Positions 27,180 through 47,778 of a stretch of DNA of 64,000 nucleotides are shown piece after piece; position 1 is the first letter of the stretch, and each line of letters begins with the position of its first letter. The stretch is from Sminthopsis crassicaudata (lineage: Eukaryota): NCBI RefSeq assembly GCF_048593235.1, contig NC_133622.1:193223198-193287197 (forward strand). The letters are read 5' to 3'. The translations under genes were made by a program, and so were the position numbers. The notes beneath the pieces are model-generated. The model made no database searches. It was not told the DNA's origin and saw only the letters and a list, made by a program, of their open reading frames with translations.

Positions 27180-28797
27180 TCTCCCAGTTTGCTCCGTACC
27201 TGTCCCAGTGCTATTAAATAGGTCTTGAGGCCCCGTCTTAAGACAGCTCAGAACTGAAGTCAGAATCCTCCTGGAAATCAAATCTGAAGCCTTCAGAGCA
27301 TCCAAGGGGCCAAAGTCAGGCTTAGAAAAGGAGACGGAAGGCTACTGCAGAGCACTGACACTGGGAAACGGAATCGGGAAACAGGGAGAAAGAAATGGAG
27401 GCGGGAGAATGGGGGGCATGGAGGGAGGTAAGCTTCTGGGCCTGGGACCCAGGCAGTGAAGAGGGTGGAACTGAAAAGAATGTACTAAGTACTAAGAGAA
27501 AGTCTATGGATTAGGCCCGAGAGGCTGAGGGCTCCCAGAAGCCTGAGGTTTCTATACCTCCTCACATGCCTCCTCCAATTGGCTCCCCCCAGCCCCTCTC
27601 CTGGCCTGTGGCTTTGACTACTCTGAGCAACCTCTGTTCTGGGGGTGCCAGACAGAGAAGGCTGTAGGGCTCGGTAGTGGCTGTTCTCCGGCCCAGCTAT
27701 GGTTGGTCTGCGGAAGCTGAGCAGTGCCCCAGCCCCACATCCCCGCATCCCTAATCATTTCCAGGTGCAGTCACCCCCATCGACTTGTGGACCCATCCTC
27801 TCTTTGGGGTTGGGGAGGAGGGTAGATTAGGATTGGGTTTGTAGAAGAGCGGGCCTAAACCAGGAGATTTGGAAGCTAGGCAGACACAGTTGCCCCCTAG
27901 GTCGCGTCACAGCTGGGTCCAACCCCCTCTTCCCTCACGGCTGGTTTTATCGCCCCCTCCTCAGCTCCCCTTTCTCCAGCCCCCCCCCCATCCACCCACC
28001 AACTCTTGCGCTGGGAACTTTTAAAAGCTCTTGAGGCCGCGGGAGAGGAAAAAAAAAAAAACAACCCTTTTATCGCCCGCAGTTTTATGGGCCAGAGAGG
28101 CTGCTCCCATTACGGGTTAGGGGCCCAGACTGGACAGCGGGGAGGGGCACAGTAGGGGGGGGACAGGGTCTGGCCATTAAGGGACAGGGGCGATAACCGT
28201 CAGAGTAAAGAAGCTGATTGGAAAGAAGCAGGAGTAAAGAGCCCATGGGCTCGCTGGTAGCCATCAGAGCGGGAGTCAGAAGACATCGAGGGATTGGGGA
28301 TATTCGGGGTAGCGCACTGTCTTGTCCCACGGAGTCTCCGAGGGTGTTCGGATCTAAGAGTCGCTTCCTCAGTCCGCGCTGGGGTCACCTGGGTCCGAGC
28401 CCGAGAACGGCAGAGCAGCTGGGGGCCCCTTGAGGTAGGGGTGGGTCTGGAGGAGGGATACGCAGCCCCCAAGCTCGGGGGCCGCCGCAAGCTCCGCCCC
28501 CCCTCCCCACCCAGTTGCCGCCTCCGGCCCCGAGGCCCTTTAAGGCTGGGCTAAGGCTCCGCTGGCGGGCGTAGGGCGGCACACGCTGAGCCGCCCGATT
28601 AAGGCAAAGAAGCAGCTTTAGGCTTGCCCCGCTCAGTCTGCTGGGCACGGACCGGGGCCCCGGGGGGCAGCGCGGGGCGTTCCCGGGGCCCGGAGCATGA
28701 GCCGATGCGCGGAGGAGGTGGGGGAGGAGGAAGAGGAGGCGGTGGAGCGAAGCTGGCTGCCGGGGCGGCGGGGACCCCTTGGCCCTGGGGCCCCGAC

Positions 28798-31294
28798 ATG
28801 ACCTCGGCCCAGGAGTCCGGGCCGCCGCCTGCAGTTTCCAATAAGCCGCTGACGCCCTTCAGCATAGCTGACATCCTGGGTCCGCCAGCTCGTCCGGCCC
28901 CGGTCCCAGTCCCCGTGCCGGCCCAGGGCCCTACTTCGCCTCTCTGCGCGCTGGAAGAGTTAGCCAGTAAGACCTTCCGCAGGCTCGACGGCAGTGCCCC
29001 GCAGGCAGCCGAAGGTAGGCGGCCAGACGCTCGGCCGAGATTCCCGTTGGAGGGAGGGAGTTTGGGGGTTGTTAAACTGCTGTTTTTAACGTGCACCCTG
29101 CAATAGCGCCCCCTCCGACTCCTACTTGCTCCTTTCCTCCTCTATCCCCTCTTTCTATACATTTTTCCTCTCTTCATTCCCGAATCCCCTTTCTTGCTCT
29201 TCTTCAACACCTCCGTCCCGATTGCTCTTTTTCTCCAGCCCTCCTTTCCCCTTCTTTATCCCTTTCTCCTCTTCCCTCTTTTCCTTGGTTTCCCTTCTCT
29301 ACCGACCTCCACTTTTCCTTCTATCTACCCCTTTTTCTCTTTCCCTGGGGTTCCTCTCTCCTCTCCCATAGTGGATTTGCTTCTTTTCTTCCCCTTGCTC
29401 TCCTCCCCCCCCCCCAATGATGCCCGTCTTTCATTCACTGTCGCCCTTTTAACTCGTCACCCCTTCTCCAACACCCTCCTCCCTCTTCGGAGTCCGGTTC
29501 CTTCGAAAACTCGGGCTACGACGGGAGCCTCCTCCGGATCAGCTCGAAATTGCCAAGGGTACTGTCCGGGGCAGCTCTATCCCGTCTTCCCTGGGCGTCA
29601 AAGATCTGTGCAGGACGTCGTCGGGTCCTTCCTTCGGCCGGCCGAGGTCTCTGTCCCACCTGAGCTCTCTAGGCAGTTCCGACCCGCAGAGAAAGCGCTG
29701 GCTTCCAAATGCTCGCGCGCGCGCACGCACACAATGGACCAAGGGAAGATAATCAGACGTTGGGGATTTGACAGCTACTGTTATTCTATACATTGCAACA
29801 AAGATGATTAAAAATTCTGTCAGGCTGAGAAAGACAAAGGGACAGAAACAGACGTGAAGAAAGAGCGAGATGGCAAGAGATCCAAGCCGGTTTAGGATCC
29901 GCCTTGGCGTCTCCCCAGGTTTGTAAGGTTCAGAGGTTCCAGGCTCATCCCTCCCCCGCTGTGCTTGTGTCTCTGAGGCTCTAACCCCTGCAGCGGCCCG
30001 TTTGGCTATCCGGAGGTGGAGGAGGGGCCCAGGGAAGGTGTGAGCCAAGCCACTGAGACAATCAGGAGGCCTGGGAAAGGCCCCGAAATCCCGGAGAAAT
30101 AGCCCTAAGAACTGAGGGAAAGGTCAGAGAGGGAAGCCCCTGGTCTCTCCCTTTTAACTCACCTGGCTGCTGAGGCCCCAGAGCTCAGATCAATCCCACC
30201 CGCCAGTCCCCTGACCTCTCCTGCATCTCTCTACCCCATGAACCTCTTCTCCTTTCCAAACCTTCTGTACTTCCAGCCCCCTCCCCCATTTCCCTTTTCC
30301 TTTGATTGCCTATCTCTGTCCTCTCAAGTCCCTACTTCTTTGTGCCTCCCTCCCCAACCCTAACTGCCTTAGTCCCTCGGTTCTTCTCAGCCCTACACCT
30401 CCCCTGACCTCTGTTTCAGACACCCCAATCAATCAAACCATCAACAAGTCTTCTCTGTGAATTCACTCCCCCCTCTTCTCCCCACCCCCCAGCCTTCACC
30501 CTGTGCTGGGAGGAAATGGAGAAAGAGCAATCCCCACTCTGAACCTGCTGGCTCCCAGAGTTGCTCATAACGTAATATTCCCAGGGGCCTCGAGTTCCCT
30601 ACCCCCTCTGCTTGGCGGAAAGGACCCTCGCGTTAGCCTCGTGGCCTTGGCTCTGCCGGACCCTCCTTGCCCATGAGGAGTTCATAGATCACCTCCTGTT
30701 TCCCGGGTTCTAATAGTGCCCACCCCCGGGCGTCTAGGGAATTCCCTGAACCCTGAGCCAGATTCCGCCTTGAGGTTGTGGAGGAGTCCGCAGTCTGCTA
30801 TAACGGCCCACGTTCTGCTGCGAAACTCGGCCTGTTCCCGGGGAGGTGCAGGTCCGGGTCCAGGCTCCCTGATTCCCCTGACCCTTCCTGTTCCTGCAGA
30901 TCGGACCGCGCTGAGCCCGCTGAGCCCCAGGCGGGTGACCCGCAGGCGTCGGAAGTCGCGGACCGCGTTCACCGCGCAGCAGGTGCTGGAGCTGGAGAGG
31001 CGCTTCGTCTTCCAGAAGTACCTGGCTCCGGCCGAGCGGGACGGACTGGCAGCTCGGCTGGGCCTGGCCAATGCCCAAGTCATCACTTGGTTCCAAAACC
31101 GCCGGGCCAAGCTCAAGAGGGACGTGGAGGAGATGAAGGCGGACGTGGCCTCCCTGCGTTCCCTGCCGCCCGCAGCTCTCCGCCGCTTGAGCCTCTCTCT
31201 GCCCGAACCAGGCTCCCAGCCTCCGGCCGACCCGGAACCCGGCAGTGACCCTGAGCCTGAGCTTTCAGAGGAGGAGATCCAGGTAGACGATTGA
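28798..31294 (+). CDS. LBX2: Ladybird homeobox 2, 203 aa (234 aa if ATG 28705 is used)
   Basis: Exons 28798-29014 and 30900-31294. [14 protein letters not shown]; [16 protein letters not shown]; homeodomain [59 protein letters not shown]; C-terminus EEEIQVDD*. Confidence 0.96.
29110..29490 (+). repeat. Long polypyrimidine (CT-rich) low-complexity tract in the LBX2 intron
   Basis: About 380 nt with very few purines on +. Confidence 0.8.
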
Positions 31295-34200
31295 AGAAAA
31301 AGTCTGGCCCTGGCTCTGGGTTACTGCGCTCGCTACCCTCGGCCGTTATCACGACTCGATTGCTGGCTGGGTCAGCTCAGAGGATCCCGGCTCCCCGATG
31401 GACTTCTATTGCTCGGTTTGCTGATTTATTCGTACAGCGTTCTCCTCCCATTCATTGTCCCTCCACTTCAGCCTCCACGCTATCCAATCCTCCCATTCTC
31501 TGGGGCTTTTCCCCAGATCCCAGAATAACTGGATCACTGGACCCCTCCGTCGTTTATTCCTATCGTGCTTGGAAGGCAGGGTCAGGACTCTGCATTGTTC
31601 CTCCTGCCACTCCCTTTAAGGGTCCTAAACCTCTCCATGAAGCTGGTTTCCTTACTCCCGAACTCGTGCTTCTGAGGTGTTCTCCACTTTCTCCATTTTT
31701 TGGAAAACCCAATAGTCTTCGCTACTGCTCCTCCTTATCCCAGTGGCCTTGTCTATTCGCCCTCGTTTTTCTCTTAACCTCGTCCCAATCTGACTATACC
31801 GCTCATTCTTCTAGGCTGAGGGTTTCCCCCCGCGCCAGACTCCGCCTCTCCCACCCGAGCTCCCGCCTTCGGAAGCCTAGGGCTCTCCGGCCCCTGTACA
31901 CTTTCACCTATCCTGTCCCCTGCCCTCCTTTTTAAGGACCCCCAAAGCACACGTTTCCTTTGCCGAAGCCTCGTTTTAATCGGATGCTAGAGTATATCCC
32001 AGCCATGGCCGTAGCCCGCGTCAGCCGGGTCTCCTGCCTGGTACAGCCGTCCGGCAGTTCCCGGCCGCCTCCCCACCTCCACCCCCGCCCCCGTCAGTGT
32101 GAATCAAGAGAATCCGACGCGGCTTTTCGCTTTTTTCCCTCCCGCGAGCGGGTGGAAAGGGTGGGCGCAGGCCACAGATGCTGGGGGCTCGGGTGCGTGG
32201 AACAACCCCTGCCTGGTACTTACGGATTGCAGGCCTGAGATCCGGGAGGGGTGCGTTCCCCCTTACCTCCCCCGCTCAGTTTTAAGAGCTGACTCCCCGA
32301 ATGGCTCCCCTCCCTCTCCCACAAGTGAGACGGCCCTCCGTTTCTAAATTGAATCCACTAAGCCCCGGGGCACCCCTCGGAATTCCTTTCTAAACGCGTC
32401 CCCAGCCCCCTCCTCATTCCAAGAGTTTATTAAGGATGACCTTGACCTGGATCCAACCCAGAACGACACGTGGGATGCGTAGAAAGCGAGACGAGAGCCC
32501 AGAGTCCGGGAGGCTACGGCGACAGCGCACTCCACCGGGTGCGTGGCTACCACCACCACCGCCGAGACAATGAAGTGCTTGGGGGACACTGTAACTCTCA
32601 CCGCGCAACGGTAACCGCACGGCGATACACTGTAACTAGCCTCCGACCGGGCCAGGCCTTTTGTACAGTTCCCCGGGGGATACAGTCACACGCCGCTGGG
32701 ACACTGTAACCCGGCCAGCGCACGCCGTTGTAACGTACGTGAAGCAATACTTACACCGCACGGTCGCACGGAACGGAGCAGGAACACCTTAACGAGAGCC
32801 ACACAAAGGCCTCCCCAAGTTGCTCCCCACCCCTCCATTCACAATTGTGGGTGTGGGCTAGAGTTGGGAACTTTCCCCACCCCCTACACTGTGGAGTGGC
32901 TGTCCCCCTCCCCGTCCCCCGGTAATTTCCCGGGTGACCGGGTCGCCGCTGGCTGCTGACATCCCCGGCTGAGTTTAATTCCTTCAACTTGTGATTAATT
33001 ACCCGCCCCCGCCCCCACCCTTCCCTCGGGTCTGTCTGCACATCAAACGCGGAGGGGGGGAGGGGCTGCGGGGAGCTACTGGACCAGAGAGAAAGAAAAG
33101 GGGAATTCTATGGTCGTTTACCCGGTTCTAGGCCGGGTAAGGTTTCCCTCAATCACCCCCTCACATTTATATTGTCTCCAAAAAAATCACCCACCCGCTC
33201 TCCCAAGCCCAACCCAGCCTCTCTGGACCCAATAAAATGTTAATCTGCACTCCCTTATGCTCTGGCTGAGTCTTTTCCCCTGGAAAACGAGAGCTTTGGG
33301 GTAAATCTGTGGGTTCTAACCCCAAGGAGCACAATATTATCCGAGTTGAGGGACAAGATACATATGGAAGAAAGTGAATCAAGAAGTCCAAGTCAAATCC
33401 TAACTTGGCTACTTTATTGTGTGATGTCACTTCACTCTTAGGCCTCTTTCCTTCTTTCTAAAATGAAGGAGTTAAGATTTCATATCCAAGGTTCCTTCTA
33501 GTTGTGACATTCACCCATAAATTTATAATTCATAAAGGGTAGGTTCCAAGAGTGGGGAAAGAAATCCCTTCTAGCCTCAGTGGCCAAAGAATATTTTCTT
33601 AAAGAGGTAAATTTAAATTGGCCTATATTTGATAGGTTGAGAGGGTTCCCATAAGGTGGCAAGAAGGGTGCCTCCCAAGGCCAAAATCTGCAGAGAATAA
33701 GTCTAGCTTATTGGAGGAGCGAGTAAAGTTTGGGATTTAAGTGTTGTGGGCTAGGTGAAGGGCAAGCTTCAGTGGCATCGATATGGAAATTGGGAAAGGA
33801 ATATATAATTAGGTACTGGGTGTAGGAGAAAAACTTGAAGGAAGGTTACCTGCAAGGAGGTAACCAAGAGGCATTAAATTAGGCTGGTGGAGTCTGGGCA
33901 GAGAGGAGACACTGGAAGGGAAGAAAGGATAGGATTTGTTGACTGGGAAGTCAGGAAGAGGGAGGAGTCATGGGGGTTTCTAAGCCCAGATAATTAAGGG
34001 TTTCATGGCACCATAGGGGATCAGGAAGGGGGAAATCAATTTCAGGAGTAAGAGGGTTGGCTTTGGGCAATTACTTCCATGAAGTCCCATCCAGCCCTCT
34101 CCCTTTGTTCAGGAGAACAAGACTATATAGTCCCCACTCTCTGCCCCACCCCCCAGTTCAGACATCCCCAAGCTAATTCCTTCAGGAAGTCTTCCCTGAT

Positions 34201-34517
34201 ATGACAGTTACATCAGGGAAAGGGAGAAGTTGGATGTATTCAATAGAAAAAGGACCAGAAGATGTTTGAAGTTGAGGAACATTTTATTGAGCTCAGTTCC
34301 TGAACTTGGAATGCAAGGGGACCCAGCACACAAAGCTCTGCCTCATCTGCCAGTAACCAGTACAGTACCTTCATCAGACACCAGGTATCAGGCTGGAGGT
34401 GAGCCCTGACTCAGAGCCTAGGACACACACAGGCCCTTAGCAACAGCAATCATCTTCAGGGTCCTGAATTCGGGCCCATATGAAGCTCACACACGCTTCT
34501 CTGGCCTTGAGACTTTG

Positions 34518-34815
34518 CTAGAGGCTCCTATGAGGAAGGAAGGATGTTAAAGGGAAGGGAAACCAAAGCTGGAAAAGTGATGGGAAAATATCAGGAAGAA
34601 AGCAGGTACTAAGAGGGAAGAGCATAGTATAGTTGCTGAAATGAGGAGAAAATTTTTTGTTCATGTGGCTAAATCGGAGGAAGTTGAGGACTGAAAAGAT
34701 CTAGTAATTTTAGAGAAGAAAGTTTCCTCACCAGGTTTTTGGCAACTGAAGGTGCTGAACTGAAGGTAATGAAACTGGAACTGGGACCGGCAGGACAAAC
34801 GGTCGGGGACCAAAT
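34518..34815 (-). CDS. TTC31: Candidate additional TTC31 coding exons 14 (34815-34732) and 15 (34527-34518, plus UTR)
   Basis: Strong acceptors (ccttccttccttgcttatattccaccag; catccttccttcctcatag), donor CTG|GTGAGG, phase-2 continuity from the donor at 37380, stop TAG at 34520-34518, AATAAA at 34288-34283. Confidence 0.6.
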
Positions 34816-34978
34816 CTGGTGGAATATAAGCAAGGAAGGAAGGGTCGTAAGAATGCATCTTTGTTACCTTCCCATCACACCCCAGAAGCTCATGGTCAGA
34901 AGACCACCCCAACACCCAGGGCATGACCCCTCCCCAAGAGAGGTAGCAGAAAGAAGGGCAGGGATCCAAGGGAACACC

Positions 34979-35142
34979 TTTTTTTTTTTTTTTTTTTTTT
35001 TTTTTGGTTGAAGCAATTGGGGTTAAGTGACTTGCCCAGGGTCACAAAGCTAGGAAGTATTAAGTGTCTGAGATCAGATTTGAACTCAGGTCCTCCTGAC
35101 TTCAGGGCTGCTACTCTATCCACTGTACCACCTTGCTGCCCC
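34979..35142 (-). mobile_element. tRNA-derived SINE with long polyA tail
   Basis: Minus strand GGGGCAGCAAGGTGGTACAGTGGATAGAG...GAGTTCAAATCTGATCTCAGAC; same family as 11385-11532; about 27-nt T-run on +. Confidence 0.88.
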
Positions 35143-35459
35143 AGAATACCCAATTCTTTACAGGGTTTATGCAAATGGAAGCTCAGGGTACATTTAAAAA
35201 TCTCTTGTTCAAATGGAGAGCTTAAAGACTTTCACTTACTGTCAAATTAAGTGACTTAACATTTCTGAGGAATTCTCATCTGTAACCCATTGTAGTGTTT
35301 AGAGAAAGTCTGTGAGCTTGAAAGCCATATAGAAATGAGAGCATGTCTTTTAATTCACAATGATTTCCAGCAAAATTCTAGGATCTATTATGAATGAAAA
35401 AAGATGGTTTAGAATAGGATAGAAACAGAAGATAACACTTAGAATAGGAAGGATTACTA

Positions 35460-36060
35460 AGAGGCAGTTTAAGTTCATCAAGAGCTCATGCCAGACTAAC
35501 CTTATTTCCTTTCAGTGACAGGATTACTGGGCTGAGTAGATCAGGGGAATACCTGATACCATACACCTAAGCAAAGCATTTAACAGTCTCATGAAAGTGT
35601 GCAGGATGACAAGAAGGTTAGGGGTATTGGGAGCTGAAGGACTAGACCTAAAGAATGTCAACAACTTGAATGAAAGCACAGGGGGGGCAAACGGAATTTC
35701 AGACTTCATGAATGAAAGGACAGTTAACACAGTGAATGACAGAACCAAGGTGTACAAAAGTTGGCTTATGTGAAAAAAGTTTAGGATTTAATGCAACCTT
35801 CATATAAAGTAGCAGTATGATGTGACTGTCAAAATATTAACACAAGTGTAGTGTACAGTTCAAGGAAAATAATCAACCCTAGTAAGAGGATATCTGAAAT
35901 AACTGTGTTCAGTTCTATGTGCCACACTTTTAGGACACTGAAAAAACTGGAATAGATGCAGAGGAGTGGAGTGAAAGGTTTGACTAGATGCTACGCTATT
36001 AAAGTAATACTTGAAGGACCTAGGAAGAATTAGCCTAGAGAAGACATGGGGGGAGGAAGG
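35460..36060 (+). mobile_element. L3/CR1 LINE reverse-transcriptase remnant
   Basis: tca tgc cag act aac ctt att tcc ttt = SCQTNLISF, a CR1/L3 RT motif, followed by frameshifted remnants (agcaaagcatttaac). Boundaries approximate. Confidence 0.7.
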
Positions 36061-36559
36061 GCTTGAATATATCATATGTTTTGTGAGGAGAACCCCAAAA
36101 GAAAGTGATACTCAATTATAAAGAAAGAGACTGATAACTCTTCTCCCTCTGACCTCTTTCATCCCTTCCCTTTCAGCACAGGCAAAACCTGTTAGGAACT
36201 AATCAGGACAATAGATTTGGGAAAAAGCTGACAATCTGAGTTAATGTTTTCCTGGATGGTAGAGGGAAAAGAAGCTATAGAAGGAGGGAGTTTTCCAAGT
36301 AATGTTTCAAGGCTGGGAGGGGTGGGCAAGAGAGTGTTCTTGAGGGACACTATGCCTCCAGGGAAGGATGGACCAGATGCTAACTTTTAAAGAGATTCCC
36401 CCTTTCCACTTAGGGCCATGTAACTGGGAGTAAGTCACTTTTTCACTTCTAGCCTGCTTCTTAATCTTTAAATAAGAAGGTTGGATCTAAGACCCTCTAA
36501 ATTGGAACTTTAGTTCTAGAAACAGGATTACTCCAAGTAAAAAGAACTACAAAGGGACA

Positions 36560-36790
36560 ATTAGAGAGTGCCAGGCCTGGAGTCAGGGAGACCTGAATTT
36601 AAATCTGGCCTCAGATGCTCTCTACCTCTGTGATCCTAGACAAGTCACTTCACCTTGTATGACTCAGTTTCCTCATCTGTACAATGAGCTGGAGAAGGAA
36701 ATGCAAACCCCTCTAGTATCTTTGCCAAGAAAATCCCAGATGGGTCATGAAGAGCTAGACAGGACCAAAACAACTCAACAACAAAAAAGG
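36560..36790 (+). mobile_element. Mar1-type CORE-SINE with RTE/Bov-B-like tail
   Basis: CORE (ctcagtttcctcatctgt) followed by gagctggagaaggaaatgcaaacccctctagtatctttgccaagaaaatccc...caacaac. Confidence 0.85.
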
Positions 36791-37375
36791 AAGAGCCACA
36801 AACAGGGCCCCAAGCTACCTTGGGAAGACTCCACCCCCACACACTGAGAGTCTCAGATATTCTGAGGAGATCATTTCTTAAGTTGGAACAGCCTGATCCT
36901 CCATCCAGGAAGGGAGGGAGCAAGCATTAGCCCCACATCAAGTAGGGATGCAGAATGAAGCATCTGGCTCAAAGAAGCTAATGACCACCTCCAAACAAAA
37001 GAACAGGGAGAGAAAGTGAACTCTGACATGAGCTTAGAATCTAACCTAAGTCAGCTTTTCATGAATAGTACCTCGCTCAGATAGATGGCCTGGACTACTG
37101 TGGGTGCTACTCAGAACCTAGCAACTGTGTCTTGTCAATGGGAGGTCCGAGAAGGCCAGTTACATGTACCAGAGTTTATGAGCAGGGCTGAGTATGGCTA
37201 TCCCCTCTCTTGGGAGAAAAGCAATGAGTCCACTCCCATAGATGTACAGAGAGAATTACCATATGCGTCCTATCTTGAGAAATGGGGAGTAGACATTACA
37301 GGCCTGCCCACAGGGATGGACAGAAGCAGCCTCTTTGGTGGACAGGTAGATACACACACAGAGACAAGCAGGCCC

Positions 37376-47778
<10,403 letters not shown>

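Follow-up and report, generated by a model that had tools for sequence, protein, structure and literature searches.

A stop codon overlapping a splice donor, and a probable C-terminal tail, in TTC31 of Sminthopsis crassicaudata and other Australian marsupials

In the dunnart Sminthopsis crassicaudata, and in Australian marsupials generally, exon 13 of TTC31 is most likely an internal exon, in a reading to which we give a probability of about 0.85 and in which a spliced, 15-exon form is the plausible main product. In the mechanism that we propose, splicing at 37380 would remove the TGA that ends the placental protein, and the Arg codon split by this cut would be completed by exon 14 (84 nt), which exon 15 would follow. 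The outcome would be a 30-residue tail rich in proline and valine, a TAG, a 3' UTR of about 250 nt and an AATAAA. Two further acceptors in intron 13 (35566 and 35384) would lead from the same donor to short alternative tails, probably ending at a conserved ATTAAA. In placentals the Arg codon is AGA and offers no GT, such that the TGA would always be read and exon 13 would be the last, with a long unspliced 3' UTR. We infer the dominance of the spliced form from gene models and conservation, which make it a plausible main isoform; the positions of the transcript ends and a function of the tail are likewise inferences. The window analysed is a stretch of 64,000 nucleotides (NCBI RefSeq assembly GCF_048593235.1, contig NC_133622.1, positions 193,223,198 to 193,287,197 of the forward strand); all positions are those of the window, on whose minus strand TTC31 lies (Table 1). 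A run of N at 2651-2842 falls in none of the loci that were compared.

Table 1. Features at the 3' end of dunnart TTC31, in window coordinates; a slash marks an exon border
Feature	Position	Strand	Remarks
TTC31 exon 13	37380-37654	-	Coding; phase 0 in, phase 2 out; identity 94% (devil), 87% (koala)
5' splice site CAG/GTGAGG	37374-37382	-	TGA in frame (37378-37376), at +2 to +4 of the intron; kept in devil and koala
Intron 13	34816-37379	-	2564 nt; SINE/MIR-type repeats and alternative 3' exons; 62-70% identity to koala outside conserved peaks
Alternative last exon, coding part	35524-35566	-	R, 13 residues and TAA (35526-35524); acceptor and TAA kept; identity 93% (devil), 85% (koala)
Acceptor for dunnart X4	35378-35384	-	Sole acceptor in 37375-33300 yielding R, S, stop (pattern scan); probably used by X4
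ATTAAA	35349-35354	-	Putative poly(A) signal, probably for the alternative last exon; kept in devil and koala
Part of a SINE with long A run	35018-35058		Inside intron 13; masked in the alignments with other genomes and left out of later searches
Exon 14	34732-34815	-	84 nt; phase 2 in, phase 2 out; 28 residues including the split Arg codon
Intron 14	34528-34731	-	204 nt; wombat isoform X3 reads through, ending ...KTW
Exon 15, coding start	34518-34527	-	Finishes W, then S, L, TAG; RefSeq X1 CDS ends at 34518
Exon 15, 3' UTR	34265-34517	-	About 250 nt; identity 89% (devil), 75% (koala); end near 34265 predicted from the hexamer
AATAAA poly(A) signal	34283-34288	-	Lies in 24 nt that show no difference between dunnart, devil and koala

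The dunnart gene and its annotated isoforms

The identity of the gene is clear from about 100 named TTC31 proteins matched by search. A TPR exon (38300-38440, minus strand), used as a query against protein representatives, led to isoform X2 of Tasmanian devil TTC31, whose 90% cluster contains four isoforms from Sminthopsis crassicaudata; the same exon is 100% identical to protein P0001. Three Pfam models, TPR_2, TPR_1 and TPR_14, exceed their cut-offs within residues 326-432 of dunnart X1, in its C-terminal half. The synteny also fits TTC31, which is divergent with CCDC142 and convergent with LBX2 in the order CCDC142-TTC31-LBX2; CCDC142 and a homeodomain gene flank it in the dunnart RefSeq locus and in three further loci that we compared. 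The peptide of exon 13 by itself gave no match in a word search whose candidates were limited to proteins of 51-161 aa, and the collection searched contained no Logan-derived dasyurid TTC31 protein. On the other side of the intergenic region, LBX2 occupies 28705-31294 on the plus strand, its homeobox exon ending at 31294 and the gene running towards TTC31; if its transcripts end by way of the AATAAA at 33231, the 3' ends of the two genes would be about 1 kb apart.

The extended structure of TTC31 is already known, being present in the NCBI RefSeq annotation of the same assembly, and our literature search found no paper that discusses the tail. The dunnart isoforms X1, X2 and X3 (562, 561 and 561 aa; XP_074130353.1, XP_074130355.1 and XP_074130356.1) all end exactly in the predicted tail, and X4 (533 aa), which ends R, S, uses the same donor with another acceptor. 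These XP_ models are computed predictions. The CDS of X1 (XP_074130353.1) maps to 47778-34518 and so ends at the same TAG, and the locus encoding it (GCA_048593235.1, CM109186.1) is 100% identical to 53778-28518 of the window over 25,261 nt. None of the approximately 30 marsupial isoforms listed ends at the TGA, and hence an unspliced, alternative C-terminus is as yet without support among annotated isoforms.

On the minus strand the 3' end of exon 13 reads ...TCC AG/G TGA GG, with the donor closing the exon at 37380. Exon 14 comprises 27 whole codons besides the split one and is bounded by an acceptor ccag/ and a donor TG/gtgagg, which, if left unspliced, likewise runs into a stop (T, W, stop); exon 15 begins at 34527 after an acceptor tag/. 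By a rough position-weight matrix, whose scores give a relative ranking only, the donor on the stop scored 11.2, that of exon 14 9.2 and the two acceptors 7.1 and 11.5, on par with known TTC31 sites (three acceptors at 6.2-9.6 and one donor at 4.2). A hexamer scan found no canonical AATAAA within 3.1 kb past the TGA, the first being that at 34288-34283; ATTAAA occurs at 35792 and 35354, the nearer of them 1.6 kb from the stop, and between the TGA and 35792 there are weak variant hexamers only. A preliminary description made from the letters of this stretch had drawn the same picture, and it was borne out in each of these respects: a stop codon overlaps a consensus donor (CAG/GTGAGG with the TGA at 37378-37376, read on the minus strand); the 84-nt exon at 34815-34732 continues in phase 2, its coordinates, sites and translation all matching; the terminal exon from 34527 adds a W from the split codon, then S, L and the stop; the AATAAA at 34288-34283 is the first canonical signal after exon 13 by the hexamer scan; and a 15-exon form of about 561 aa has its counterpart in NCBI models of 561-562 aa from the same assembly.

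The same donor feeds further tails. The exon beginning at 35566 has been annotated for three species (devil X6, koala X3, brushtail possum X2) and is absent from the four dunnart isoforms. The ATTAAA at 35354 sits about 170 nt after its TAA and probably serves this alternative last exon, in which case it is no refutation of the 15-exon model. In a wombat model derived from Ensembl the tail comes from still another exon, probably located near 36019-36034. Variation is also seen upstream of the stop. The acceptor of exon 13 (37651-37656, minus strand) is a NAGNAG, tcag/cag, which accounts for isoform pairs differing by one Gln (dunnart X1 versus X3, devil X4 versus X5). In devil X1-X3, exon 12 is longer by 10 residues through a downstream donor; reading through exon 12 of the dunnart (38067-38078, minus strand) meets a TAG after three codons, and an extension of the devil type therefore cannot exist there.

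Conservation of the tail in marsupials and the homologous stop in placentals

RefSeq X1 of the devil, wombat, koala, sugar glider and brushtail possum ends in the same tail, which with the dunnart makes six Australian marsupials, all sharing the TAG; the tail of the sugar glider has an in-frame insertion of 2 residues. In a three-way DNA alignment of dunnart, devil and koala, exon 14 is 96% identical to devil and 88% to koala, as against 79-89% and 62-70% in the flanking introns, and the stop/donor, both sites of exon 14, the acceptor of exon 15, the TAG and the AATAAA block are kept in all three. In an unbiased 60-nt scan of dunnart against koala, peaks of at least 85% identity fall on exon 14, on the first part of exon 15, on the AATAAA and on the alternative last exon at 35566-35524. 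For exon 14 against koala, pN/pS is 0.15-0.26 in the annotated frame versus 0.5-1.4 in the other two frames, values that derive from just 7-10 substitutions; the corresponding ratio for exon 13 is 0.31-0.33. Across the six species, invariant columns make up 64% of the tail, 64% of exon 13 and 87% of the TPR exons. The exon-like conservation, together with a coding pattern of substitution, supports the prediction that exons 14 and 15 are real coding exons. No Pfam family was found on the 30-residue tail. Blocks 85-92% identical to koala also occur outside annotated exons, at 34021-34240, 36201-36260 and 36961-37020, the one at 34021-34240 being situated just past the predicted poly(A) site of TTC31, between it and LBX2.

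In a match list of 110 proteins, most eutherian TTC31 models end ...LPQAR, which aligns with ...LPPSR of marsupials. At this point the genomes of beaver, horse and flying fox read CC AGA TGA followed by GGG or AGA, with no GT, and those of dunnart, devil and koala read CC AGG TGA followed by GGG or GGA. The presence of AGA TGA and AGG TGA at an aligned site implies that the stop is orthologous, and that one synonymous A/G base decides whether a GT is there. In horse, an RNA-seq contig shows 13 exons and stays in line with the genomic sequence to at least 1.3 kb beyond the stop, and no homologue of exon 14 or 15 was found downstream of TTC31 in horse or flying fox. As far as species were sampled, the extension is lineage-specific, as the preliminary description had proposed: the tail is found in six Australian marsupials, most eutherian models stop at the homologous Arg, and three eutherian genomes are without the GT. 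The sole TTC31 model from opossum reads into intron 12. Judging from the proteins alone, the tails of gibbon and tarsier TTC31 resemble the products of stop-loss read-through.

Alternative readings and the direction of change

Taken alone, the features in the dunnart sequence are within chance and constitute weak evidence: when the 4 kb downstream are shuffled by a first-order Markov model, 13% of the shuffles give at least one open exon with equally good sites, in a test whose thresholds were chosen post hoc. That the splice-like sites and the open frame are nothing more than a chance pattern in 3' UTR or intergenic DNA is nevertheless extremely improbable, being contradicted by conservation across species and by independent gene models in six of them. 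Nor do we give much credence, albeit slightly more, to the suggestion that exons 14 and 15 have been kept for a non-coding reason, for instance as regulatory elements between TTC31 and LBX2, with the frame being incidental. The conserved blocks at 37020-36961, 36260-36201 and 34240-34021, which lie outside annotated exons, would be in line with it. However, the conservation peak matches the exon borders with the AG and GT kept, a synonymous excess is seen in the annotated frame only, the sugar glider indel preserves the frame, and six species have the stop in common.

A more serious, though still unlikely, alternative is that the principal dunnart protein stops at the TGA, like its placental counterpart, and that the tail is made in minor amounts, by splicing of an intron in the 3' UTR; on this account, the annotation pipeline would list spliced forms for the sake of the longest frame, and forms retaining the intron would go unreported. 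In its favour, the stop is orthologous to that of eutherians, and intron 13 words are widespread in the sequencing runs found: several runs, whose type we only guessed, contain 58-78% of the sampled words of 34200-37700 (range over runs 18-78%). Either pre-mRNA in rRNA-depleted libraries or a frequent unspliced form would explain this abundance; the public dunnart data comprise rRNA-depleted, stranded RNA-seq from 23 samples and a single poly(A)+ Iso-Seq pool (PMC11091235), and rRNA depletion presumably applies to these runs. Against it, a full-consensus donor has been kept in three marsupials, the 3.1 kb past the stop contain no AATAAA, and an ATTAAA comes no closer than 1.6 kb, exon 14 shows constraint of a coding type over the deep dasyurid-koala split, and 0 of about 30 marsupial isoforms listed end at the TGA. 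On balance, we prefer the reading in which exon 13 is internal and the 15-exon form predominates.

How the two states arose is a matter on which we are more tentative. Somewhat short of even odds, in our estimate, is the proposal that one synonymous A/G change in the Arg codon before the stop turned a terminal stop into a splice donor, or did the reverse; the two directions share this estimate. In the former case, AGA TGA would have become AGG TGA in marsupials, after which two exons would have been recruited from former 3' UTR or intergenic DNA, and the 30-residue tail would have been held by purifying selection across the dasyurid-diprotodont split, these being the two Australian orders sampled. 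In the latter, the eutherian stop would be what remains of a 5' splice site since lost.

Outside therians, TTC31 has further domains: in snakes, lizards and salamanders the TPR region is followed by an RRM, to which salamanders add a CCCH zinc finger, and therian TTC31 is without both. We considered the tail as a relic of these lost RRM and CCCH domains and rejected the idea for lack of signal. A BLASTP comparison of residues 490-562 of dunnart X1 with axolotl and boa TTC31 gave E-values of at least 0.7, and tblastn of four reptile and amphibian proteins against the window and horse recovered nothing but the TPR exons and a single coding exon upstream (41007-40915 of the window), with no relic of an RRM or CCCH domain.

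Comparison with known systems

The closest comparison is with the RefSeq TTC31 of the dunnart and the five other Australian marsupials, which have the same exon structure, tail and TAG and present no structural difference. The public annotation of the 3' end of TTC31 is thereby confirmed as sound, and our analysis adds nothing for annotators. TTC31 itself is an uncharacterised gene. Eutherian TTC31 is orthologous, lies in the same CCDC142-TTC31-LBX2 neighbourhood and shares the TPR exons and the position of the stop; it differs in having 13 exons, an AGA Arg codon without a donor and a terminal exon 13 with a long collinear 3' UTR.

In composite terminal exons and alternative last exons, a splice site competes with intronic polyadenylation, as in the secreted/membrane switch of immunoglobulin mu (PMC5928244, PMC8559711). 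Marsupial TTC31 resembles these in that the 5' splice site of exon 13 would set the C-terminus and that the intron after it contains several alternative last exons. However, the use of marsupial exon 13 as a terminal exon is putative, and no canonical poly(A) signal is found near its stop. A second, more general parallel comes from the consensus of the 5' splice site itself: a phase-2 intron with a GTGAG or GTAAG donor usually shows an in-frame stop, such as TGA, at positions +2 to +4. In this regard exon 13 is ordinary, with AG/GTGAG read unspliced as AGG TGA, and the donor of exon 14 behaves in the same way. Marsupial TTC31 differs from such introns in that its stop has, in another mammalian lineage, an orthologue that truly ends the protein. 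The result would be a clean pair of states, in which one and the same stop ends the placental protein and is removed by splicing in marsupials, with a single synonymous base between the two. This would be a modest addition to what is known of such sites, and a tidy example of how a C-terminus might be lengthened or shortened by the gain or loss of a donor on the stop codon.
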